From: Paramoeba atlantica | Taxonomy: Eukaryota; Protista; Discosea | Length of the DNA: 64,000 nt | NCBI GenBank assembly: GCA_977017575.1 | Contig: CDRNVI010000083.1 | Coordinates: 1 to 64,000, forward strand | Direction of reading: 5' to 3' | Shown here: piece by piece, positions 347-15,900 of the stretch | How positions within the stretch are numbered: position 1 is the first letter of the stretch | How the letters are laid out: the number at the start of each line of letters is the position of its first letter | Translations under genes and position numbers: made by a program | Notes under the pieces: generated by a model | Database searches by the model: none | The model's input: only the letters and a program-made list of their open reading frames with translations | What the model was told of the DNA's origin: nothing

Positions 347-3300
347 TCACTTGTTCCATCTCCAAAAAAAAAAAAAAAAACTTGTTCCATCTGCTCTATG
401 TTGGGTGGTAAGATTCGTAAAAACAAAATCATTAATTCCTAATGTACATGAATGGGGGCTGCAGCTAGCACCGTAGACCAGTGATGAGCCTGAAGTTCGT
501 ACTTGGGGTAATTGGAAAAAATCCCCGACCATGACTATGGAAAACCCGCCAAATATTGCTTGGCTCTCAGAAACTGCACAAAGTCTTTGATGAATTTGCC
601 ACAAAGTCTTAGTTGACACACACGATGCTTCGTCGATCAAAACGGTATCCACGCCATTGAATTTTTCTTTTAACTTTTTCAGCCTCTGAGGGTTTAGATA
701 ATCTAGGAAAGCGCTCTTACTCTTTTTACTCCACGCTGCTGGGAAACAGAATCCAGAATGTATGGTCTCCCCATTAATGTTGACAGCGCAAGCCCCCGAG
801 TATCCGAAGGCAAGTACGGATCTTGGGCGGAAAGCGTTCTTGGCTTCCATAAAGCATCGGCTGGTTTCACTTTTACCACACCCCGGACCTCCATGTAGAA
901 AGGCTTTGTATCCTTCTGACAATCCTATATGGTTTTCTGTTTGCTTTAGTGTGTTGAGAACGAATTGCTCTTGATCCTTATCCAACTTTTTGTCGAGAGA
1001 CCTATTCCTTATATGTTTTTCACCTAAACGAAAAATGAGCTCAACACTTTTGTTTATACTAAGAACTCGGGCTTTCGAGAACGGATTCTGATTCAAACTT
1101 TCCAATACATCTTCTTGCGTTGCATTATTTTGCTTGAGCTCATCAATATCATGATCAGGCGTTTGATTTGAAATTATCCTCCTGGATTTCCCAGCTGACA
1201 CCTTTATCTGAAACTTGTATGTTTTGTTGTCGAAGTTATCGCGACAGGATGTACTCATTGCGCCGATGCTCTGAGGCGCAGCATAGCAATGATTCGTTCT
1301 CTGATCCGATGTCCATGTATCTTTCAAAAGCCTTTCTACTTGATCTTCAAGTTCAACCAAGAAAAGTTCAGTTTCAACGTTTCTTTTCTTTCCTTTCTTC
1401 GAATTTGCTTGATGTTGTGCAAGGAGATCGTTCGCTTCCTGAATTCCATCCGCAGCTTCTTTTTCTAAACACCCAGTAGCTTCTGCAACATCTTGCGCTG
1501 TTTCTGTTAAGCCTTTTGATTTCCATTCTTCATAAGTAGTAGCTTCCTGGTGCCTAAACATGTTGATCATGCATCTTGGTTCTTCAAAGGAAGAATCCTG
1601 AATTCCGATTCTCAAGTTATTGATGATCTTAATTAAGAAAGAGCAAATTTCCGGAGGGTATTCCGTTCCTTCCACCTTTTTTCCCTCACTACACTCCTTG
1701 AGTATCTTCAAGTACTCTTTCCAGTCGCTTAGCCTATATGATATTTTCTTATCTTTTGAGAAGGGGCGCATAAGGGCAGAAAAATATTTCGCGTGTTTTT
1801 TTGCTAAAACAGTTGTAGAATGATCGCAATCTGTAGCGACATCCCGGAGATGTGGCCAGTGTGGTATATACCCTGGAGATGGGATAACATATTTGCTCCG
1901 TATTCGCTGAGTAAAAGTTTCAATCAGCGGATGTCCTTTCTTGAATGCGAATGTAGTGTTTCTTGATCTCCCTTTCTTGGTTTTACCAATTGTTTTCACT
2001 GATGATATGCGAACTCTCGCAATAGTGGCGTCGTAAAGGTAAAAATTTAAGAACTCAAGTTCTGTGCCTCGAAAGTAATAGTCCAGAGCCTTACTGCACA
2101 TTTCAGTAGACCCATCATCCCTTACAATCACATCAGAGAGGCCTTCATTATCTGATATTTCGCTATCAGTCTCTGTTTCGTCTTCCTGTACTCCTGAAAC
2201 GCCTTTGACCATTAATTTAGATGCCTGCCGTACATCCAAGCAGGAAACTATATGGCTGCATTCTTCCGACTCATAACCAAGGCAACAATACATGGCCAGC
2301 TGGGCCGACACTTCTTGCATTCCTAGTTGACTATTTCCAAGCCTATTGCAGAGCAATGTGTCTGCTGAATTCTCGTGCGATCTTCGGCTTCCGTATTTTT
2401 CTTTGTGTTTTGCTGCTTGAACTGCCCCAATACAAGTATTGATATCAAGCAAGTTTTTGGACAAATATTTAAAAAGATAGAAAGTAGTTATCGCTGCAAC
2501 GCAAGCTGATCCGAGAAAAACAACATTTGTATTGAATCCAAGGAGGCAGGACATGATCGAATTGTATTCTGCAGTATTTTTATCCCTTGATGATCTCTTA
2601 GGCAAGTACAATAGAGGGCGAAAGTCGGGTGACATATAACCAAAGAAAGAGGGCTCTGTACTTTCAGCACGGGCCGCCATATTTTCTGAAACTGTTTTTG
2701 CCACTACTTTTCCTGGTGTAGAACTTGATTGTTCTAACAAATAAAAAGCATTCAATGGCGTAACCTGGCGTGGGTATGCATATCGGCATTTTGTTGGCGC
2801 TACACCTATATTTTTGAAACATTTCTCCGTATGCACATGCTGTTGCACAGTTGATGCAACTCGATGCTCTCTGATATCCATGGCTTTCTGATTATCGAAT
2901 GGCGGGCATGGCTCTAACCCCACTCTTCCCCCGGCGCTTCTCGTATCTCCTTTATCCCACGGCACGGAAACCGTCATCCAATCAGAAACTAATTGGCTTA
3001 TACTGTTTCTTTCTGATTCCATATGAATCTTTTCGGAAGCATACTCAGCGAGAGGGATGCCCCATATAACAATATGCATATGCAAATTTCCTCTACCTTG
3101 TGTCTCAACCACCCCAAACATTCCCTTCATAATCTTGAAAATTCCGACGGGCATTTCTTCTGAAATAGCACTGACCGATTGGCCTGATTTTTTAAATCGT
3201 TTGTGCGGGACTACACCAAATATCGTGGTAAGTAACGCATCAATAATTAAATGAAATGTTTGCGCTGCATATGCAGGGTGATCTCGCACTTTTTGTACTC

Positions 3301-3649
3301 TTTGGTACGCATCGTCAATTAGAAAATCCTCTTGCACGCTTTTTGAAGAGGCGCATAGGTATTCCAGGGTAATTTTCATATCTGGATCGCATGGGGATAC
3401 GGTGGCGTAGAGTGTCGGATGACCCATGAACCCATGAATTGCCACCATTTGTTTAAAGCACGCATTCCGAGCTGCGTCGGAAAATGGAACATCACCAGTT
3501 ACAATATGCAGGACATTGCATGCTTCCAACAGAAGCTTACGATTTTCCTTTCGTTGAGGGTCCTTCTGTGCCTCCTTCAACTGCACAATTATATTTTCTT
3601 TTTCCAAAAGTTTCTTTGCTTTTTTCCACATATTGGGCTTGACCCTCAC
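347..3649 (-). pseudogene. Helitron Rep (HUH) plus Pif1-type helicase segment
   Basis: HPTLYATVSPCD, HUH motif, Walker A/B, LTTQHRADG. Frameshifted at 362-392 by a poly(A) insertion; the helicase frame resumes and stays open to base ~1. Confidence 0.9.
349..392 (+). mobile_element. CC-poly(A) insertion flanked by a 13-bp target-site duplication
   Basis: ACTTGTTCCATCT at 349-361 and 380-392 around CC+A run. Removing 31 nt restores the helicase frame HRADGTSEKDFEH. Confidence 0.85.
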
Positions 3650-3658
3650 ACTTCGAGC

Positions 3659-4855
3659 TCAGGAATGGCGCCTGATTTGATCCCAATGTAAGAAACCAAA
3701 ATTTCCGTTTCTGCACCAACGAGGGTCTTTTTGCAACAACAAATGCTTCAGGCCGCTGTCAGGAGTAAGGGGGCGCTTTAGGAGATTGGCAGACGCTTCA
3801 GAAAGAACTGGAAAAAGATCTGGAAACCCCGTTCCCAAAATTTTGTCATTCTCGTTAAACTCTTTAGCTGCACTTGTAACGTGAATTCTGGCATGGTGCC
3901 TTCTTTGGTCATTACCTTTTATGAGGTTTGTTAGGCTTTCGACTATCTCATCCTCAGCATTTCGTTGGGGAGGTTCACATAGTAAAACGTTTTCTACCTC
4001 CGACTTTTCTTCTTCTATCGCGTTTCGTTTATGAGCTAATAGTGAAGCTGCCACTGAAATGGCATTGTTGACAACAGTTGCTTCTTCAAGTATTCTTTTG
4101 CTTTCGTTCACCAAATCCTCTATTCTCTGTTCCGATATGTGAATATCTGAGTAGAATACATTGTGTTCTTTAAGAAAATAAAGCCAAGCTCTTGTAGCGT
4201 CAGCCCGAACAGAGAAATATGCCTGTAGGGAAGCATCTGTTTCAGCTTTCCTTTTTGTTTGTTCACCGACAAATGTCACAAACACCCTCTGTTCAGTAGC
4301 TGGAAGAATCTGAGCTATGTCCTGAGGTCCTGTTGAAAACAATGAAATAACATGATTTCAAAATTTTTTCTCAAAATTCCGCCCATGACGAATTTCACAG
4401 AGCGTCTGGAAATTCAGAATACGGCATATGGCCGATCGTTCGACAACTCCCAATGTTGGCAAACGGAGATCTCTTAAATTCAGACCAAAGTCCAAGTCGT
4501 TCTTAAACGAAAAGTATGGGATGCCTCCTAGTCTAACGCTTTTCCTGCAACGAGAACACGAGCGCACCTCAGTACCAAACACCGCCTCCGAATCTATGCA
4601 ATACAGATTTCCACCTATCGAAGACGTGTGTTTTCCTTTTAAGTTTGCATCCATGATAGCGCGAAGCATGTCACAGTCTTTTACAGGGATTCCTTCCAAA
4701 ATCTCATGGGAAGGTTCAATAACCCCACACACGCCACACGACGTAGCTTTAAGCTCTGTATTCCTTTGGAAATTATGAAAACATTCAGCTTTTTCTTCAG
4801 ACGTGCAAGGCTTCAATTCCTGCTTCCAATCCTTTGGAAACATTGGTGATCCCTG
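3659..4855 (-). pseudogene. Helitron N-proximal segment (CxxC motifs, DUF6570-like region, GFPDLFP motif)
   Basis: CGVCG, CSRC..IPYFSFKNDLDFG, LPTLGVVERSAICR, WLYFLKEHNVFYSDI, GFPDLFP, LLLQKDPRW. Single in-frame TGA codons at 4358 and 3659. Confidence 0.8.
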
Positions 4856-5242
4856 AGTGGAGGTGGCGGAGTGGCAAGAACTCAAAGTTTGAAGCACATG
4901 GTGCCCAGACGGCGAGTTCAAACCCACTCATCGCAATATTCCCGGCGGCCTCACTCTAAGAGGCTGGGCTGAGAACCGACTAGGCCAAAGTACTCGGAGG
5001 ACCGTCCCGGACCCTCCCCTCAGGGAACTAGCTCCCTTACACGGCTTACACCTCTTGGGTGAGCCGTGTTGACGTACAGTTCGTCGACGCAGCGTGTTGG
5101 CAACATCACGTTGGTGCCGCCTTGGGCAAGCGGAAACTGGTAGAGGACGTCGGCCTCGGAACTTCCAAATCTGTCTGTGAAGGGTCTGGCTTGCCAGTGA
5201 CCATCCGGAGCAATCCGGAATGATTTGGATTTGGATTGGATT
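4856..5242 (+). mobile_element. 387-bp SINE-like or 5'-truncated LINE insertion with (T)TTGGA tail
   Basis: 9-bp TSD TGATCCCTG at 4847-4855 and 5243-5251. Removing 396 nt restores the Helitron frame (FLQGS|PMFPK). The last ~80 bp recur at 45639-45717. Confidence 0.75.
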
Positions 5243-5287
5243 TGATCCCTGTAAAAATTTTAGTGATGCAGATCGAGGGCATTCTTC

Positions 5288-6686
5288 GGGAGGGGGGGCA
5301 CTCGATGAATATTCATCGAACGTACTGTCCGCTAGATGAATATTCATCGAACAGGATGTCCTGTTCGATGAATGGATTGCAGTACGACTCGTTCGATGAA
5401 TCATTCATCGAACAGGATTTCCTGTTCGATGAATGAAAAAACAATTTTTTTTTGTAAAAAAAAAGCTCGTTTCGGTCTGCATCACGCTCCTGGCTGCTAC
5501 CTTGATCCGTAAGACAAAAATAAATCCGAAACGTTATCAAAAAGCGGAAGTATTCTTAAAACTATTGCCTCATAAGTTTACAAAGATAAAATCATAACTT
5601 ACAAATACACAAACCTGCGGAAGTGGCAGACACAGGTCCTCAGTGCGCGACCCAAAAAATATTGGGTTGGGGGTACGTTCGTTGTACTCAACGAACTGCC
5701 GGATTTTCGTTGAGTACTCAACGAACGGAAATTTACGGTGCAAGTCAAGGACTTTTGTGGAACACCCAAGAATTGTTTTTAATTTTCATTTTCCGTGCGT
5801 TCAGTATCCTACACTTCACTATATACGTTGACAACGCCTGCGTAGCGAAAACTACGAAATTCAGTGAGCTTCGCAAATTGCTTCCCACTAACGACGCACA
5901 GGGGAATCCTACGCGGGGTACGGCTCAGGCCCGCTCACGCGGGCCCTCGCCGTTTCGCGGCCGCGCGCACCCCCGCTCACGCGGGGGCCCCCGCGCGGCC
6001 AAAATGGGTACTAAAATTTGTTATCAAGGTAGTTGGGCTTCGCAAATTGCTTCCCACGAATCTAGAGAGAAGCACACGTACAATAATCTTTAACGATAAA
6101 GATACAGTTTCTGTACCTTGTTGATTATTTACTTTTTTTACCTTTCATGGGAGTGTTCACACGCTCCAAAGCAAAAGAATCAGGAGTAGCTCCTGAGATT
6201 TTGCCGCTCCCTCGTGCCCGATGGAAAAAGAAGGCCGTGATGCCAACTCATCCGCCCGCCGTGCTAATATCCACCACCTCCGCATGGAGCGCGCGGGTCG
6301 CCAAAAAATATAATTATGTCCCAGGGCTACGCTCACAGTTGGGCCTTGCTCGCAAAGGGGGGCTTTTGCCTCCAGAAGCGGGCTACGCTCACAGTTGGGC
6401 CTTGCTCGCAGACGGGGGCCTTGCTTGCACACTTGGGCTTCGCTGACAGTTGGGCCTTGCCTCCAGACATGTAAACGAGATGGTAATGTTCAAATTCCCC
6501 AAAAAAAATCGAGACGAAAAATTCGTGCAGAAGTGCCCGTTGGATGAATGATTCATCGAACGCACTGCCCGTTCGATGAATATTCATCGAACGGGACGCC
6601 TGGTCATCGAACGGGACGCCGTTCAATGAATATTCATCGAACTAGCAGTGCGTTCGATGAATTTTCATCGAATGCCCCCCCTGGCC
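5288..6686. mobile_element. Non-autonomous TIR element (GG ends, 8-bp TSD; Merlin- or hAT-like) with palindromic subterminal arrays
   Basis: TSD CATTCTTC at 5280-5287 and 6687-6694. TIR core AGGGGGGGCA(C/T)TCGATGAA(T/A)ATTCATCGAAC. Roughly 130 bp of TTCGATGAA/TTCATCGAA palindromes at each end. Confidence 0.8.
6085..6123 (+). ncRNA. Spliced-leader (mini-exon)-like sequence not followed by a GT donor
   Basis: AATCTTTAACGATAAAGATACAGTTTCTGTACCTTGTTG contains the kinetoplastid SL core ACAGTTTCTGTAC and terminal TTG. It is followed by a T-rich leader and ATG at 6147. The 5' end is uncertain. Confidence 0.7.
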
Positions 6687-7237
6687 CATTCTTCTGCCTT
6701 TTCAATTGATGCTAGTTTCCACTTCTGTTGTATGGCATTGCTTTCTTCCGTCAATGCAAATTCCTGGGAAGGACGCGTGTTCTGGTAAATTGACTCACTC
6801 TGGCGTGCATGAGACAAAGAGGCAATTTTTACGTTATGTTCAGGGGTGGAAACATGCAGTTTCACGTTTTCCAGTGAAGCAGCACCTCTATATTTGCAGG
6901 AGGAGCATCTGAACACTCGCCTGCTAGGTAAGAAAAGCACCTTTCTATGGGATTTGTTATACGTTGCTAAGAAGGCTCTAATTTGATGAGATTCCCCTTT
7001 CTCATGCCGTTGAACGTTCTTTCTCACTACTTCAATATTGCAAACATCGCACATGTAAAGTGCAACGTTAACGCACCCTTCTACTTTCTGAACATCATAC
7101 ATTTCCTCACCATCTTTGCAATGCTTCTCCCGCATGTGCCGCTTCATGTTTCTTTGCAAACTAAAGCATCCGCAAATATTGCAACGTATTTTTTGACTCT
7201 CGTGAGACGACAGGTGGGTATGTCTCTTTTTCGGCAT
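6687..7237 (-). pseudogene. N-terminal triple zinc-finger segment of the Helitron protein
   Basis: CNICG..KRHMREKH, CDVC..QRHEKGESH, CSSC..LHVSTPEH. Joins in frame to the 5280 side (EKAEE|CPRSASLK) when 5288-6686 plus one TSD is removed. Confidence 0.75.
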
Positions 7238-7697
7238 ACTAGAGGAATAAAAAAAGTGTTTGAAATTACTCTAGCACGAAATGCCGCTCGATTACTGTAC
7301 CTGAACACACTTCAACCTCGTAAACGCCAACTTCACTTTTCATACATTGTCAAACCATACAAAATTTCAAATTCCTGGCAGTCTTCCTCCAAAAGTGGCT
7401 TTTTCATTACTAATACAGTAATGATTCAATTTCCTACTTGTACCACTATAGTGAAGTGTCTTAGCTCGGGCGGCGGGGTGCGCTAAGCCCCAATACTACT
7501 AGCCTAAATCATCAACCAAAGCTTTCAAAGTATGCTAGCAGTGTCCCTGGCCGGAGTGATTCTCTTTCTCTTTCCTTTATTTCTACCGCCCACCTTTCCA
7601 CGCCCTTCTTTTTCTACACATCCTCACTCTGTGTCTCTCCTGTCCCACCCTCTCTCTGAGAATAGCTCTCTCTGAGAATAGTATGACCCTGCTCGTT

Positions 7698-7760
7698 TTT
7701 TTTTCTCTACATATATACAAAATGCGAACCGTGTTTTTGGTGGCCAGCTGGCCACTTTTC
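7698..7760. repeat. ~65-bp direct repeat, left copy (right copy 12039-12107), containing the palindrome GTGGCCAGCTGGCCAC
   Basis: ATATATACAAAATGC(G/A)AACCGTGTTTTTGGTGGCCAGCTGGCCACTTTT at both positions; partial third copy at 7770-7800. Confidence 0.9.
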
Positions 7761-7789
7761 GACGAAGCACAAACCGTGTTTTTGGTGGC

Positions 7790-10160
7790 CAGCTGGCCAC
7801 CCTTCCACAACATGGCCAGCTGGCCACCCTTCCACAACATGGCCAGCTGGCCACCCTTCCACAACATGGCCAGCTGGCCACCCTTCCACAACATGGCCAG
7901 CTGGCCACCCTTCCACAACATGGCCAGCTGGCCACCCTTCCACAACATGGCCAGCTGGCCACCCTTCCACAACATGGCCAGCTGGCCGCCCTTCCACAAC
8001 ATGGCCAGCTGGCCACCCTTCCACAACATGGCCAGCTGGCCACCCTTCCACAACATGGCCAGCTGGCCACCCTTCCACAACATGGCCAGCTGGCCACCCT
8101 TCCACAACATGGCCAGCTGGCCACCCTTCCACAACATGGCCAGCTGGCCACCCTTCCACAACATGGCCAGCTGGCCACCCTTCCACAACATGGCCAGCTG
8201 GCCACCCTTCCACAACATGGCCAGCTGGCCACCCTTCCACAACATGGCCAGCTGGCCACCCTTCCACAACATGGCCAGCTGGCCACCCTTCCACAACATG
8301 GCCAGCTGGCCACCCTTCCACAACATGGCCAGCTGGCCACCCTTCCACAACATGGCCAGCTGGCCACCCTTCCACAACATGGCCAGCTGGCCACCCTTCC
8401 ACAACATGGCCAGCTGGCCACCCTTCCACAACATGGCCAGCTGGCCGCCCTTCCACAACATGGCCAGCTGGCCACCCTTCCACAACATGGCCAGCTGGCC
8501 ACCCTTCCACAACATGGCCAGCTGGCCACCCTTCCACAACATGGCCAGCTGGCCACCCTTCCACAACATGGCCAGCTGGCCACCCTTCCACAACATGGCC
8601 AGCTGGCCACCCTTCCACAACATGGCCAGCTGGCCACCCTTCCACAACATGGCCAGCTGGCCACCCTTCCACAACATGGCCAGCTGGCCACCCTTCCACA
8701 ACATGGCCAGCTGGCCACCCTTCCACAACATGGCCAGCTGGCCACCCTTCCACAACTAGGCCAGCTGGCCACCCTTCCACAACATGGCCAGCTGGCCACC
8801 CTTCCACAACATGGCCAGCTGGCCACCCTTCCACAACATGGCCAGCTGGCCACCCTTCCACAACATGGCCAGCTGGCCACCCTTCCACAACATGGCCAGC
8901 TGGCCACCCTTCCACAACATGGCCAGCTGGCCACCCTTCCACAACATGGCCAGCTGGCCACCCTTCCACAACATGGCCAGCTGGCCACCCTTCCACAACA
9001 TGGCCAGCTGGCCACCCTTCCACAACATGGCCAGCTGGCCACCCTTCCACAACATGGCCAGCTGGCCACCCTTCCACAACATGGCCAGCTGGCCACCCTT
9101 CCACAACATGGCCAGCTGGCCACCCTTCCACAACATGGCCAGCTGGCCACCCTTCCACAACATGGCCAGCTGGCCACCCTTCCACAACATGGCCAGCTGG
9201 CCGCCCTTCCACAACATGGCCAGCTGGCCACCCTTCCACAACATGGCCAGCTGGCCACCCTTCCACAACATGGCCAGCTGGCCACCCTTCCACAACATGG
9301 CCAGCTGGCCACCCTTCCACAACATGGCCAGCTGGCCACCCTTCCACAACATGGCCAGCTGGCCACCCTTCCACAACATGGCCAGCTGGCCACCCTTCCA
9401 CAACATGGCCAGCTGGCCACCCTTCCACAACATGGCCAGCTGGCCACCCTTCCACAACTAGGCCAGCTGGCCACCCTTCCACAACATGGCCAGCTGGCCA
9501 CCCTTCCACAACATGGCCAGCTGGCCACCCTTCCACAACATGGCCAGCTGGCCACCCTTCCACAACTAGGCCAGCTGGCCGCCCTTCCACAACATGGCCA
9601 GCTGGCCACCCTTCCACAACATGGCCAGCTGGCCACCCTTCCACAACATGGCCAGCTGGCCACCCTTCCACAACATGGCCAGCTGGCCACCCTTCCACAA
9701 CATGGCCAGCTGGCCACCCTTCCACAACATGGCCAGCTGGCCACCCTTCCACAACATGGCCAGCTGGCCACCCTTCCACAACATGGCCAGCTGGCCACCC
9801 TTCCACAACATGGCCAGCTGGCCACCCTTCCACAACATGGCCAGCTGGCCACCCTTCCACAACATGGCCAGCTGGCCACCCTTCCACAACATGGCCAGCT
9901 GGCCACCCTTCCACAACATGGCCAGCTGGCCACCCTTCCACAACATGGCCAGCTGGCCACCCTTCCACAACATGGCCAGCTGGCCACCCTTCCACAACAT
10001 GGCCAGCTGGCCACCCTTCCACAACATGGCCAGCTGGCCACCCTTCCACAACATGGCCAGCTGGCCACCCTTCCACAACATGGCCAGCTGGCCACCCTTC
10101 CACAACATGGCCAGCTGGCCACCCTTCCACAACATGGCCAGCTGGCCACCCTTCCACAAA
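7790..10160. repeat. 27-bp tandem satellite, ~87 units (CATGGCCAGCTGGCCACCCTTCCACAA)
   Basis: Near-perfect tandem array. Each unit has the 14-bp palindrome TGGCCAGCTGGCCA. Rare variants are CCGCCC and AACTAGG. Confidence 0.98.
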
Positions 10161-10226
10161 TTGGCCACTTCTAAAACATGGTCACTTCCACAACATGGTC
10201 ACTTCCACAACATGGCCAGCTGGCCA

Positions 10227-10320
10227 TGATGATATCTTTTAAGATAGAGTATTTTGAGGATGTAACTAACTTGCGCATATGACGCTGTTGGGTGCATCCC
10301 TTATGCGGAGAGTGTCTCTG
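10227..10320 (-). mobile_element. Second, shorter copy of the same retroelement 3' end
   Basis: Identical to 10951-11044, with identical degenerate satellite units alongside (10160-10226 = 10884-10950). Confidence 0.7.
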
Positions 10321-10882
10321 GCCAGCTGGCCACCCTTCCACAACTAGGCCAGCTGGCCGCCCTTCCACAACATGGCCAGCTGGCCACCCTTCCACAACAT
10401 GGCCAGCTGGCCACCCTTCCACAACATGGCCAGCTGGCCACCCTTCCACAACATGGCCAGCTGGCCACCCTTCCACAACATGGCCAGCTGGCCACCCTTC
10501 CACAACATGGCCAGCTGGCCACCCTTCCACAACATGGCCAGCTGGCCACCCTTCCACAACATGGCCAGCTGGCCACCCTTCCACAACATGGCCAGCTGGC
10601 CACCCTTCCACAACATGGCCAGCTGGCCACCCTTCCACAACATGGCCAGCTGGCCACCCTTCCACAACATGGCCAGCTGGCCACCCTTCCACAACATGGC
10701 CAGCTGGCCACCCTTCCACAACATGGCCAGCTGGCCACCCTTCCACAACATGGCCAGCTGGCCACCCTTCCACAACATGGCCAGCTGGCCACCCTTCCAC
10801 AACATGGCCAGCTGGCCACCCTTCCACAACATGGCCAGCTGGCCACCCTTCCACAACATGGCCAGCTGGCCACCCTTCCACA
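10321..10882. repeat. Second block of the 27-bp satellite, ~21 units
   Basis: Same unit; begins with the same AACTAGG/CCGCCC variant pair as 9543. Confidence 0.97.
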
Positions 10883-10950
10883 AATTGGCCACTTCTAAAA
10901 CATGGTCACTTCCACAACATGGTCACTTCCACAACATGGCCAGCTGGCCA

Positions 10951-11291
10951 TGATGATATCTTTTAAGATAGAGTATTTTGAGGATGTAACTAACTTGCGC
11001 ATATGACGCTGTTGGGTGCATCCCTTATGCGGAGAGTGTCTCTGCATCGCTCCATTGCGGGGAATCACGCTTATGCCATAATAAGAAGCTGGAACGGATA
11101 GCAGCTCGGGAGAGTGACGCCCGACATTTAGCCCCCAAATCTTCGTCCCCTCCAAACAAACGATTAATATCCGCTGAGGAGGCTACCAGACCACCTCGTG
11201 CTCCAATTTCGAATACGAGGAGGTACGTGTTCGGGTGCACTGTTCGTCGTTCGTGTAATAGGGCGTTGTACTTGAGGCGTTTATATTCATT
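10951..11291 (-). mobile_element. 3' end of an REL-endonuclease non-LTR retrotransposon (HERO-like), 5'-truncated
   Basis: KRLKYNAL..VFEIGARGG..AAIRSSFLLWHKR..QW resembles the HERO/R2-group C-terminus. Short 3' UTR ending ATATCATCA. Both junctions lie in the satellite palindrome. Confidence 0.65.
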
Positions 11292-11389
11292 CCAGCTGGC
11301 CACCCTTCCACAACATGGCCAGCTGGCCACTCTTCCACAACACTCTCCCACCCCCGTGGGACTCACTCAGTGGACTCACTCAACGTGAG

Positions 11390-12010
11390 TCACTGCCCCA
11401 CGTGGCAGTGCTCTGACTCTCTCACGTGCCACTGTAGGTACAGTGCCGATGCAGTCGCTACCTTACGTGGCAGTACTCTCACTCTCTCACGTGCTACTGC
11501 AGCTGCACTGCATCACTGCAGTCACTGCCTCACGTGGCACTACTCTTACTCTCGCACGTGCCACTGCAGCTGCACTGCATCACTGCCTCACGGGGCACTG
11601 CTCTCACTCTCTCACGTGCCACTGTAGGTACAGTGCCGATGCAGTCACTGCCTCACGTGGCAGTACTCTCACTCTCTCACGTGCTACTGCAGCTGCACTG
11701 CATCACTGCAGTCACTGCCTCACGTAGCACTGCCTGTCACTCTGCCACTGTATGTACACTGCAATCACTGCCTCACGTGGTAGTACACTTACTCTCTCAC
11801 GTGCTACTGCAGCTGCACTGCATCACTGCAGTCACTGCCTCACGTGGCAGTAATCTTACTCTCTCACGTGCCACTGCAGCTACACTGCAGTCACTGCCTC
11901 ACGTGGCACTACTCTTACTCTCGCACGTGCCACTGCAGCTGCACTGCATCACTGTGCAATCACTGCCTCACGTGGCACTGCTCTCACTCTCTCAAGGGCC
12001 ACTGTAGCTA
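11390..12010. repeat. Degenerate ~53-67 bp tandem repeat, ~10 units, rich in CACGTG, CTGCAG and CACTG
   Basis: Consensus about CACTGCCTCACGTGGCAGTACTCTCACTCTCTCACGTGCTACTGCAGCTGCACTGCATCACTGCAGT. Confidence 0.9.
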
Positions 12011-12189
12011 CACACTGTACCACTCGGACCTGCACATTATTTTTCTCTCTCTATATATATACAAAATGCAAACCGTGTTTTTGGTGGCCAGCTGGCCACT
12101 TTTTTCAAGAAAAAAAAATCTGAAAAAAAAAATCGTTCTGAATTTGTTTTTTTCGCGATTTTGAGCATATAATTTTTTTTGTTCAAAAA

Positions 12190-12263
12190 TGTCGATGCCG
12201 GGAATCGAACCGCGGACATCCAGCGTCAAAATGGACCCCCTTTACCAACTGGACTACTCAAAG
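12190..12263 (-). pseudogene. tRNA-like sequence (degenerate tRNA or SINE head)
   Basis: A-box TAGTCCAGTTGG and B-box GGTTCGATTCC at tRNA spacing, followed by a T run. Acceptor and T stems do not pair well. Confidence 0.45.
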
Positions 12264-12929
12264 GACTCTCCTTAGTCAACCAGTTTGTCGTATCGCAGAC
12301 CTTTGCAGACGCACTTTTTTTACCAAAAGTGTTCTACAATTTGGGAAATGAGGTCGTTGTAGATGATTCTTCGAGTATTAAAGAGTTCATCTAATGAGCT
12401 ACTGCTACGTTTTAAAATTTTGAAAAAACTCGATCTCTCACTTCTTTGAGGGGCATTTTCAAGTTTTGGAATTAACCTTAGTAAGCGAGTTAGATACTCC
12501 GTATCTCCCTCAATTCTGTCGCAGGGCTACGCTCACAGTTGGGCCTTGCTCGCAAACGTGGGCTTTTGCCTCTAGACGTGGGCTTCGCTCGCAGTCGAGC
12601 CTTGCCTCCAGACAGGTAAACTAGGTGATGCAATATAAGACAAAAATACACAATCCTGCGGAAGTAGCAGGCATACACTATGCTATTTCCTGCGGAAGTA
12701 GCAGGCATAGGTTCTCAGTGCGCGACCCGCACACCCCCCCTGGACCCCCCCCCTGGACCCCCCATTTTTTTCAATTTTTTTTTTCAGTTTTGGACCACCG
12801 GAGCCCCCTTTTATATTTTTTTCTTCTATTATATTACTGTGTTCCTCTTTATATTTTCACTGTTTTTGTTCACTTTGTTTTCAATAATCGAGTGTAGAGC
12901 GGTAGTTTTACAACCACCGCAATGAACTC

Positions 12930-15900
12930 CTTTACACCACCCCTATTCCCGAGAATGTGCCCGAATACTGGACAAGACGAGCTGTCAGGATAGACGGAGA
13001 GAAACCCACGCCAGACACGGGGAAGATAACAGACAATGAGGAGACGAATCACTCCCTCGTCATACGAACAAACATGACACAGCCTCAAGCGAACCCTGAC
13101 ACCAACGCTTCACCTGCAACCAAGACTCCGAAACGCAAAACACCGAATTCCACTCCACAATACGCCATACAACGTGAATGCCCAGCGGCAGGTTGCACCT
13201 GGAAGACTCCCCCACACGGAGAGCAATGGCAAGCGTTCTACAATTATGTAGCTCACCGAAATGGTAAAAATATTTCAACTGATTGGTGGGAAAAGGAAGG
13301 TAGATTCCTTTGCAAGGATTGCATCCGACATTACGACAAAATCAAACAGAACTCTCACCTTAAGCACTGTAAAGGACGAAACCAACCCGTTCGATCACTA
13401 ACCCCGCCCATGCCGACGTCTTTTTCGGAGAAAATAAATGAAGAGCATCCAGTTGATCCACTTCCACCTCTTATCTCAGTTTGTTCACTTCCTTTAAGCA
13501 CCTGTAAGGACGTCCCCAATTGCTGCAGATTCTTGTGGGCCAGAATTTTGAGTGAAGCTTTAACATCCGCTGTCAAAGAAAACACGGTGCAGGCCTGGAC
13601 CCTCCTCGCGATGCTTCCGAAGTGCGTTCTCCCGGCCCCTTACCGTGGCGGTCGTAAAGGGCGCACATCGTACTCCACATATGTGGAAAAACGCATGGAG
13701 CTCTGGCTCGGTGGAGACTACCTTCTCCTCTGGGACCAAGCCCTGAAGGATGGCGAGAGAAAACGCTCGAAGCCCAGGAACCCATAAAGTGACGAAGATA
13801 GAGCGGCAATAAGAGCAGAGCTCTTGGTGCGTCAGGGTGAATTCTCTAGAGGAATGGCCGCCATATCTGCAGCTACCATGGCCCCGGACAACGAGGAGAC
13901 CCTTGCCAGGCTGTTTGAAAAACAACCAGAGCCCCACGAAAATCCCCTCGAGGAAGATCCACCGCCGATTAAGGGTGCCCCTCTACAGTGGCAAGAAGCA
14001 GAGGTCAGGAATGCGGTTCAAAGCTTTCACAGGGGGTCTTCCGCCGGTACAATGGGCCTCCTTCCTGAGCATCTCCAGTCGGCTATTTTGGAACACGAGG
14101 ACAAAAACGTAAATCCTCTCTCAGCTCCCACACGCCTCGTGAACCACTTACTCGAGGGAAAGGCGCCGCCTGAAGTTCAGCAGTTCTATGCAGGAGCTAG
14201 GCTTTGCGCTCTGGAGAAAGGCAAAGACGACGTACGGCCCATTGCGGCGGGCGAAACCCTAAGGCGCCTAGTAAGAAAGGCAGCATGCCTCGCCGTAAAG
14301 GAGAAGGCGGGAACGTTATTCCGTGGACGCCAATACGGTGTTGCCGCATCTGCGGGGGCCGAACGAGTGATTCATCTCTGTCGGAAAACTATGCTCAACA
14401 ACATGGGGAGCGACAAGCTGATTTTCTGCAAGGTTGATCTGCGAAACGCTTTTAACAACGTCAGCAGACCCGTCTTCGCTCTTCTCACGCGCCTACATTT
14501 TCCGGAACTTTCGACCTGGGTAGAATCGTGCTACTCAAGTCCGATTTGCCTCACGTATGGAAACAATTTCATCCCTTCAGCCGAAGGCGTGCAACAAGGT
14601 GATCCTTTAGGCCCAATTTTATTCGGTTATGATCATACGCTCGTGGCGCAGAGATACGTCTCTCTGTGTGACGGCCGATACCATCAGCGCATGACCCGCA
14701 TACGACGGGTGTCACACAGAGAGTGGAGTGCGAGGTAGGAGACGAGTCGCCCATCGGTCATGCTACAGCACGTATAGCCATGGTTCATGCTGCAACACGG
14801 TCAAGCCGTGGGTTCAGGCGGTAAGATGGTCTATCGTGGATCATGATGCATCATGGGGAGGTCCGTTACCGCCGCACTCGCTACAGCATGTAGGGAGAGA
14901 GGGGTGCAAGTTCGCATCCCCTATACACGCATACAACGTGTCCTCCCGCTGTAGAACGCCCAGTGGTCCTCAAAGGAGGCCACCATGGCGCATAGATCCC
15001 GGGAGAAGAAAGCACGAGAAGTAGAGAGCCGGGGAGGGAAGAAAGCTCACTCGAAGAGAGCGCGCCGGGGAGGGGTGAAGAGTGCGAAGTGCTTCCCCTA
15101 CTTCCGCAACAAAGAGGGACAGTTCCATCTAGCCGTCAGCCGGAAACGGGCATTTAAAAATTAAGAATATGCCCGTTTCCGGGAAAAGAAAGGAAGGGCT
15201 AGAAAAATGTACCAACAAGGTACAGAAACTGTATCTTTATCTAGTGCTTTCTGAGGTGACGGAAGAGATAGCATCCCGATCAAACCTTGACTCGCAACTG
15301 TGGTACATCGACGATGGGGTTCTTATGGGAGAGGCTGTGGAGGTCAGAAAGGCGTTGGACGTTTTTTCGGAAGTTGGCCCCCGGTGCGGACTTTTCTTGA
15401 ATCCTGCGAAAAGTGAAATCATAACGCCACCTTCCTCGGCTCATCTCACAACGCTTTTTCCCGAGATCCCAAAGGCGAAAATCCGGCATGACGGGACCTT
15501 CGGTATCCTTGGGAGCCCGATCGGGTCGGACGAGCACTGCGCGGAGTTCCTGATGCAGCACGCCATCGACCCAGCACGTGAGACCCTAGCCGCCATAGTT
15601 TTAATAGGAGACCCCCAAGTGGCCAGTGCTCTAATCCGTCAATGCACGGAGTTCTGTCAGATGGTATACGCCCTCCTAACTGCACCCCCACAGGCCCTTA
15701 CCCATCTTTGCTTTTTACTAGACGACTCTGTCATGACGGCTGTAGAGTGGGCACTTTTTCCCCTGAACCTCCACGCACGTGATCAAATACTACGCAGGAA
15801 GCGCCACGGAGGCTTCGGTCTCAGATCGTCTACACTGCACGCAACGGTAGCATACGTTTCATCTGTCGCTCACGCCGCCGACATGGACGACTGGGACCCC

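Follow-up and report, generated by a model that had tools for sequence, protein, structure and literature searches.

DNA-encoded relicts of a spliced leader (SL) are said to have been described by Slamovits and Keeling in 2008, as the DinoSL relicts of dinoflagellate retrogenes. Other known systems bring foreign fragments or leader sequences together with mobile DNA: Pack-MULE-type transduplication, the filler DNA of internally deleted hAT elements (Ac/Ds), and SLACS, CRE and CZAR, the retrotransposons of trypanosomatid SL RNA genes. Chimeric retrocopies that arise from template switching are known as well, e.g. the mammalian U6-L1 chimeras. The locus presented here is a variant of the dinoflagellate system, and in dinoflagellates DNA-encoded leader relicts are an accepted signature of retroposition (PMC6050394; also PMC5585692). 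In the literature on Euglenozoa, no report of leader relics as retroposition tags was found; in the Diplonema genome paper, SL RNA arrays are mentioned along with reverse transcriptases of the SLACS type, but relics are not.

The window analysed here is a stretch of 64,000 nucleotides (positions 1 to 64,000 of contig CDRNVI010000083.1, forward strand, assembly GCA_977017575.1) that carries the species label Paramoeba atlantica. A sequence-only reading had drawn attention to an SL-like exon inside the element at 5288-6686, followed by a 5′-UTR-like stretch and an ATG and lacking a GT intron. It offered two explanations, i.e. a retrocopy of a trans-spliced mRNA captured by a transposon, or a mobile expression cassette that pre-encodes the leader. 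The arrangement itself is confirmed by reading of the sequence. For comparison, other loci (cited as L001 and so on) were fetched from an ENA assembly by exact look-up of a 99-aa ORF of the element and by further look-ups, ~149 kb in total. In addition, contigs of public sequencing runs under the same species label (X1, X2, X5) were aligned to 4300-7300; the depth of a contig is not equivalent to a copy number, and the kinds of run are guesses.

Identity and boundaries of the leader

Direct reading of 5100-6900 reveals a 39-nt leader of the kinetoplastid/diplonemid type at 6085-6123 on the plus strand, consisting of AATCTTTAACG and ATAAAGATACAGTTTCTGTACCTTGTTG. As shown by RNA contigs and by comparison with locus L007, the exon is complete, its nt 1-3 (AAT) doubling as resident sequence of the upstream module b2. 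Downstream, the leader passes directly into ATTATTTACTTTTTTTACCTTTC, which starts with ATTATTTAC after 6123, and then comes an ATG at 6147; there is no GT intron. The 13-nt leader core occurs twice in the window, where 0.09 occurrences are expected by chance. The exon at 6085-6123 lacks what follows it in an SL RNA gene, namely the GT intron, its stem-loops and the Sm site. No Rfam family was reached at gathering or at permissive thresholds, the only matches being chance hairpins in the palindromic ends, and a literature search with the leader string returned no paper that contains it.

Is this the leader that the organism places on its mRNAs? Run X5, taken as a transcriptome from its repeat content, has none of the high-copy DNA repeats of 4300-7300 and thus behaves as RNA. 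Its contigs match 6086-6123 with no differences, some as far as 6126 or 6130 by chance extension, and past 6123 they go into several different, unrelated sequences. Four of the five X5 contigs that were listed have the leader at their end. These matches establish an authentic leader with its 3′ boundary at 6123, whereas the first nucleotide is placed only to within 1 nt. The sequence at 6085/6086-6123 is the real leader of the organism's mRNAs. The sequence-only reading had asked whether the SL of the organism might differ from this exon; it does not, as 6086-6123 is identical to the X5 mRNA leader.

The two ends of the exon are of special relevance. At the 3′ end, the last 28-29 nt of the leader are identical to a fragment at 15213-15241(-), which a GT intron follows. 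The SL-locus copies go on with GTACATTTT past the leader exon, but the sequence at 6124 goes on with ATTATTTAC instead. The leader stops at the exact exon/5′ splice-site boundary, and the SL intron is absent. At the 5′ end, the comparison is with a module of type b in L007 that extends through ..CACACGTAGAATAAT (..GTAGAATAAT) and is then replaced by unrelated sequence. At the same joint the window reads ..CACACGTACAATAAT (..GTACAATAAT) and then CTTTAACG, and its overlap with the L007 module is 3 nt. By this comparison, the six bases that precede the leader are resident, and AAT, which is nt 1-3 of the leader, represents a microhomology at the joint, i.e. the leader begins at nt 1-3, where unrelated resident DNA ends.

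Other leader sequences in the genome

The second leader piece of the window, at 15213-15240 on the minus strand, comprises leader nt 12-39, and the GT intron begins at 15212 and runs downwards; the exon end at 15213(-) is directly followed by GTACATTTTT, the intron. The piece starts at nt 12, the classical insertion point of SLACS, CRE and CZAR. It is part of a dispersed, SL-locus-derived element of ~610 bp at 14632-15240(-), copies of which are found with 96% identity at L009:3839-4449 and L010:3853-4459. Two ORFs of this SL-locus piece had no match in exact look-ups. A homology search for the SL RNA gene recovered L009 and L010, both with 5′-truncated dispersed copies, and no array. All DNA-derived fragments of the SL locus that were seen (in the window, L009 and L010) retain the GT intron.

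Two further DNA-encoded leaders that have no intron are present at L008:3337 and L008:4230. The leader at L008:4230 is situated between direct repeats of ~30 nt, and an AG precedes the upstream repeat copy. The window and the fetched loci alike are rich in reverse-transcriptase ORFs. One reverse-transcriptase ORF adjoins the leader piece at 15213-15240(-), and a REH2-type domain is found in L009. This domain and the type of the leader suggest a euglenozoan akin to kinetoplastids.

The host element

The intron-less leader is contained in a non-autonomous element with terminal inverted repeats (TIRs) that spans 5288-6686 (plus strand) and is inserted in a minus-strand Helitron-like ORF. The element is flanked by target-site duplications of 8 bp (CATTCTTC) at 5280-5287 and 6687-6694, which are evident from reading and from the joint of an X1 contig. 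Self-comparison places the left TIR and its subterminal palindromes, of the TTCGATGAATATTCATCGAA type, at 5288-5436; the right subterminal palindromes and TIR, at 6536-6686, are delimited by reading, by self-comparison and by the other copies. The TIRs are imperfect. Over the subterminal 144 nt, 5291-5434 and 6551-6682 are 78% complementary, and the terminal ~36 nt match at 32 of 36 positions, as judged by eye and counting an extra G of other copies. An empty site is represented by an X1 contig of 5797 nt, in which 5279 is connected to 6687, with 8 letters common to both sides and 1407 nt skipped. This contig has single-copy depth, and as its flanks differ by ~1%, it may derive from an allele or a paralogue of the Helitron around the element.

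Four other full copies, with 96.5-97.5% identity and different flanks, were found at L001:4123-5542, L002:4124-5541, L004:1815-3233 and L006:4016-5401. The copies in L001, L002 and L004 have 8-bp duplications of their own (AAACTTTT, ATCTGATA and GTTAAATG). No clean 8-bp duplication is visible at the full copy in L006, nor at the copy L005a, and from their sequences both look recombinant. The element copies in L003 and L005 are rearranged, and related TIR elements that have no leader are present at L005:5441-6296 and L006:7500-8090. It is confirmed that 5288-6686 is a mobile TIR element; its superfamily is putatively hAT-like, as assigned from the 8-bp length of the duplication alone.

Sequences that flank the leader

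Both flanks contain repeats that occur elsewhere with no leader. Upstream, 5590-5653 (+) is the end part of a resident repeat of ~178 bp, termed R, to the left arm of a GC hairpin. In the R copies at L004:227-290, L005:1902, L005:5663 and L010, the left arm leads into GCGCGC, after which come the loop and then the right arm; the hairpin forms where neighbouring R units meet. The next module (a, 5654-5760, +) consists of short hairpin units and is also present in leader-less sequence at L005:5955-6022 and L006:7736-7817. Modules b1 and b2 (5761-6084, +) are a dispersed GC-rich repeat directly upstream of the leader, in which a 23-nt motif is found twice, at 5866 and 6035. Copies of b1/b2 that have no leader at all are located at L006:7840-8027, L007:103-450 and L008:2380-2671, 3026-3139 and 4782-4949. 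A comparison of 5830-6084 with the SL intron and the spacer downstream of the intron showed no similarity.

Downstream of the leader, segment c (6124-6209, +) is made up of a pyrimidine-rich, 5′-UTR-like stretch of 23 nt (6124-6146), the ATG at 6147 and 21 codons. Among the fetched loci it was encountered nowhere but in the eight leader-block copies described below, which are all 100% identical in c. Segment d1 (6210-6284, +), the remainder of what is possibly the RNA-derived part, is found also at L005:6020-6093, where it is leader-less, 90.5% identical and joined directly to module a. The joint between a and d1 in L005 forms the end of a 643-nt stretch with 100% identity to L005:1619-2261, which marks the joint as a recent recombination breakpoint that is uninformative on the ancestral state. 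For this reason L005:5441-6296, where 5760 is joined to 6210, was considered as the pre-insertion state and rejected as proof. Neither the SL intron nor its downstream spacer has similarity to c-d1. The leader-specific segment downstream of the leader amounts to ~86-160 nt, with a 3′ limit that depends on d1.

The R repeat resumes at 6285-6476 (+) with the hairpin loop, the right arm, A6 and TATAATTA, and then come units of the GGGCTACGCTCACAG type. The same continuation of R is found in places that do not have the leader block, at L004:248-368, in two tandem units of L010 and in the window at 12517-12621. A contig joint of 5653 to 6285 represents the plain form of R, with the block missing. 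One might take the A6 at 6303-6308 for a poly(A) tail and regard TACAAT/TATAAT as a duplicated target site. Both readings were rejected, as these sequences are in resident repeats: A6 and the sequence that follows it occur in R where there is no leader block, and A6 is therefore not a cDNA tail. The leader block has neither a poly(A) tail of cDNA origin nor a duplication at its flanks, which indicates a fragment and not a full processed copy.

Further contigs relate to this region. A joint of 6078 to 6317, in which a block of 238 nt is absent, has a depth of 105 in X1 and 2324 in X2, compared with single-copy flank depths of 13.9 and 149, respectively. No example of this form is present among the fetched loci, and there may be extra letters between its two sides. 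The RNA folding of 6085-6320 gave z = -2.5, a value that is driven by the GC hairpins and is uninformative. ARAGORN detected no tRNA in 4700-12400.

The open reading frame

An ORF of 99 aa starts at the ATG with MGVFTRSKAKES (MGVFTRSK...) and runs from c through d1 into the R repeat (6147-6446, +). Its second half represents the translated R repeat. The N-terminal 55 residues were compared with 5.8 billion proteins in a word-based search and with 1.84 billion representatives by full HMMER, and both searches retrieved nothing but ORF variants of the element itself. Pfam showed no family for the 99-aa ORF or for neighbouring ORFs. In the RNA run X5, no contig lies over 6140-6319; the leader alone is covered. 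The ORF is probably not a gene.

Does MGVFTRSK have a parent gene elsewhere, as a retrocopy would imply? The search proposed by the sequence-only reading yielded none in the protein libraries or in the X5 contigs, although absence from these collections does not amount to proof. An X1 contig of 6098-6314 is unbranched, also across 6124, and has ~5x single-copy depth. This depth is close to the copy number of the leader block and appears to leave little room for a separate, near-identical parent, which is only suggestive, as contigs drop rare variants.

Copies of the leader block

The sequence-only reading had proposed to look for the same cassette in further copies of the element. The leader block was recovered in eight near-identical copies, i.e. 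in the window, L001, L002, L003, L004 (two copies), L005 and L006. Since the copies were ascertained via the exact ORF, the statement that all of them carry the block is valid for this subfamily only. Variants consist of a C>T change in the leader of L001 and a G>T change just upstream of the leader in L002. The relic is in at least seven copies of the element, and one more is in a tandem array of the resident repeat. The latter, at L004:431-996, is not in a TIR element and looks from its sequence like a recombinant via the shared repeat. The near identity of the eight copies indicates that the relic was acquired once, before amplification. In the five full copies, 2 of 396 columns are variable in the leader, c, d1 and R, and 7 of 324 in b1 and b2. 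These counts are small and much of the stretch is resident repeat, so that they provide no argument for selection.

Origin of the leader block

How did a leader come to be encoded in a transposon with its intron missing? Probably, the cDNA of a trans-spliced RNA contributed a 5′ fragment that was patched into the non-autonomous, hAT-like element, and the amplification of this element came later. The leader block is most likely a fossil of the 5′ end of a reverse-transcribed mRNA, and not a working expression cassette. Both ends of the leader are RNA boundaries and the DNA-derived SL fragments keep their intron, which speaks for a cDNA made from a trans-spliced RNA. The presence of b1/b2 and of R at several loci, each with no leader, adds support in that it shows the flanks to be resident. 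Also in favour are the contig joint of 6078 to 6317, where the 238-nt block is absent, the intron-less leaders in L008, the reverse-transcriptase ORFs and the dinoflagellate precedent. There is neither a tail nor a duplication, the 5′ joint shows microhomology and the 3′ joint falls within a hairpin loop, all of which argues against a clean target-primed insertion.

The events can be pictured as follows. A trans-spliced RNA of the organism would have been reverse-transcribed, and the 5′ end of the cDNA (the 39-nt leader and ~86-160 nt downstream) joined into the interior of the TIR transposon. The cDNA end would have met resident b2 at the 3-nt AAT microhomology on the 5′ side, and on the 3′ side the cDNA piece would have met the GC-hairpin loop of the resident ~178-bp repeat. 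Joining might have come about via template switching or via break or gap repair, and presumably not by clean target-primed insertion. The element would subsequently have moved as DNA and carried its passenger to at least seven element copies, and one further copy of the relic would have recombined into the tandem array of the resident repeat. We infer the RNA intermediate, the joining at microhomology and the functionlessness of the relic. The idea of a retrocopy captured by a transposon is thus retained in part. In its favour are the authentic leader, the exact exon end and the start at nt 1-3 beside unrelated DNA. What did not hold is a plain, complete copy, as no parent was found, there is no poly(A) or duplication of a cDNA, and the segment is only ~86-160 nt long.

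Could the RNA have come from the transposon itself? If c-d1 were native to the transposon family or to an autonomous partner, a transcript of the element might have been trans-spliced just upstream of c and its cDNA recombined back into the element, with the leader replacing the acceptor region. The d1 sequence in the second TIR subfamily (L005:6020-6093) is consistent with this, as is the failure to find a host parent gene in the protein libraries searched, and the leader at L008:4230, with its direct repeats and upstream AG, has the structure expected of a cDNA laid on its own locus. We nevertheless regard such a self-derived relic as unlikely: the ~149 kb of fetched DNA contain no leader-less c, the X1 contig of 6098-6314 does not branch across 6124, and c-d1 has no linked transposase-like ORF and no Pfam match. 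Still less can be said for a transfer at the DNA level, whereby the exon of an SL RNA gene was moved or rearranged into the element with no RNA intermediate. Fragments of the SL locus are mobile in this genome, as seen with the ~610-bp element, and recombination is frequent among the resident repeats. However, it would be surprising if such a process had produced a leader with RNA boundaries on both sides (nt 1-3 and the 5′ splice site), as every DNA-derived SL-locus fragment seen keeps the GT intron and the flanks of the leader are dissimilar to the SL intron or spacer; we consider this origin very improbable.

The second explanation of the sequence-only reading, a mobile expression cassette, received no support. 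A promoter and a pre-encoded leader would here allow an ORF to be expressed and translated with no need of trans-splicing, whatever the orientation of the surrounding transcription unit, but the upstream module is dispersed and widespread with no leader, the ORF has no relatives or domains, its second half being the translation of a satellite repeat, and X5 has no RNA contig over 6140-6319. The leader is complete and the ATG is at a natural distance from it. The smaller number of variable columns in the leader, c, d1 and R of the five copies also fits a cassette, but low variation is common to the neighbouring repeat and the counts are small. A highly covered X5 contig, in which an internal leader (from nt 7) is found behind sequence that resembles b2, would fit a cassette as well. 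Trans-splicing in kinetoplastids usually takes place at the first AG after a pyrimidine tract. The pyrimidine tract at 6126-6146 and the first AG at 6152-6153 would therefore direct trans-splicing to a site downstream of the ATG, and trans-splicing past the ATG, if the locus is read through, argues against use of the ORF. All in all, there is very little chance that the block works as a cassette. A promoter role has been proposed for dinoflagellate leader relicts (PMC6050394), and by analogy the encoded leader and the upstream repeat module might constitute a portable start site, a prospect that we judge to be slight. If true, copies of the transposon would seed new leader-bearing transcripts wherever they landed in an otherwise polycistronic genome.

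Comparison with known systems

With the leader block viewed as a probable cDNA relic, its significance is twofold. An intron-less leader in DNA shows directly that this kinetoplastid-type genome takes up copies of mature RNAs. The new aspect is that a cut-and-paste transposon picked up a leader relic and multiplied it as DNA. Because a transposon multiplies them, leader relics cannot simply be counted as independent retroposition events, and the annotation of mRNA 5′ ends by leader matches will be misled at these copies.

The locus shares features with several described systems. As in Pack-MULEs and the filler DNA of Ac/Ds, a mosaic of foreign pieces joined at microhomologies makes up the interior of a TIR element that has target duplications and was amplified by transposition; the captured piece, however, bears the signature of a processed RNA, the leader, and does not consist of genomic gene fragments. 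The junctions coincide with RNA ends and with a strong hairpin and involve short microhomology, as would be expected if reverse transcriptase had switched templates, and are reminiscent of the U6-L1 chimeras, but no target duplication or poly(A) bounds the chimera, and target-primed insertion is thus not shown. With SLACS, CRE and CZAR it has in common that a leader sequence is linked to mobile DNA. In contrast to these, the leader at 6085-6123 is uninterrupted and intron-less and therefore does not represent a split SL RNA gene; the likeness concerns a separate feature, that at 14632-15240.

The locus also resembles the DinoSL relicts. In both cases a leader that is normally added post-transcriptionally is encoded in DNA before a 5′ UTR and an ORF, and the SL intron is absent. 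There are also differences. The leader here is of the 39-nt kinetoplastid/diplonemid type, and it heads a short orphan fragment for which no parent gene, poly(A) or recognisable protein was found. Furthermore, this relic does not head a functional retrogene but is inside a DNA transposon that multiplied it. No new mode of gene expression is revealed by the locus, which is a variant of the dinoflagellate SL-relict phenomenon.

Further leader-bearing sequences

Part of the spliced leader is also found in a dispersed element of about 610 bp, with copies on the minus strand of the window at 14632-15240 and in two loci outside it, at L009:3839-4449 and L010:3853-4459. The element consists of leader nt 12 (or approximately 18) to 39, the GT intron and about 560 nt of downstream spacer, and in these three copies it always ends in ..GCGTATGAT. 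The L010 copy lies inside a leucine-rich-repeat-like open reading frame, after messy partial leader repeats. How did these copies originate? They look like 5'-truncated retrocopies of SL-locus read-through.

Leader-bearing contigs are also present in public sequencing runs carrying the same species label. In X5, a run that behaves as RNA, a highly covered 825-nt contig carries the leader internally, at 292-331, beginning with nt 7; the contig is known only from loose ends at window positions 6091 and 6130. Upstream of this leader is sequence resembling module b2, the later part of the GC-rich repeat (window 5761-6084) that precedes the leader of the TIR element, and the upstream letters recur in X2 and X4. 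One X4 contig, a loose end before window 6085, has 19 A immediately before the leader. These may be a poly(A) tail that runs straight into the next copy headed by a leader; a library artefact is the alternative.

Recombined element copies and neighbouring repeats

The TIR element (5288-6686) contains one monomer of R, a tandem repeat of about 178 bp that is also found at L010 ~1748-1926 (minus strand), L004:190-420 and window 12517-12728. Where R units meet, the sequence forms a GC hairpin of 13 bp, after which comes A6; it is at this hairpin that 631 nt split the monomer in the TIR element. In L005, a duplication of 643 nt (1619-2261 and 5380-6022, 100% identical) takes in the left half of a TIR element along with its flank and stops exactly at the boundary of module a (window 5654-5760 in the element described here). 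Past it, one copy continues into a cassette-bearing interior, with the intron-less leader, and the other into a leader-less one. Elsewhere in the window, 7624-10600 is occupied by a satellite whose 27-bp unit is repeated, nearly unchanged, about 110 times.

The Helitron-like open reading frame that holds the TIR element has a further insertion of 396 bp at 4856-5251, with the duplication TGATCCCTG at 4847-4855 and 5243-5251. An X1 contig without the TIR element also lacks this insertion, whose depth in run contigs, not to be read as copy number, is 50-700x single copy. It looks SINE-like, because its head is tRNA-like by eye, with motifs resembling box A and box B, and its tail is rich in GGATT; ARAGORN made no tRNA call within it. 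A stretch at 12190-12270 (minus strand), adjoining A/T runs, is also tRNA-like by eye, and ARAGORN made no tRNA call there.

DNA-encoded leaders in L008

Two further DNA-encoded leaders are found in L008. At 3320-3400 a related TIR element adjoins, at its right end, a 5'-truncated leader (17 nt); this leader forms the head of a different repeated open reading frame family, which also occurs at L004:1-100 on the minus strand. At 4200-4300 nt 4-39 of the leader exon, which here contain an additional C, are flanked on both sides by direct repeats of about 30 nt, and AG precedes the upstream repeat. Such a layout would be expected if an RNA had been trans-spliced at this AG and its cDNA placed back onto its own locus.
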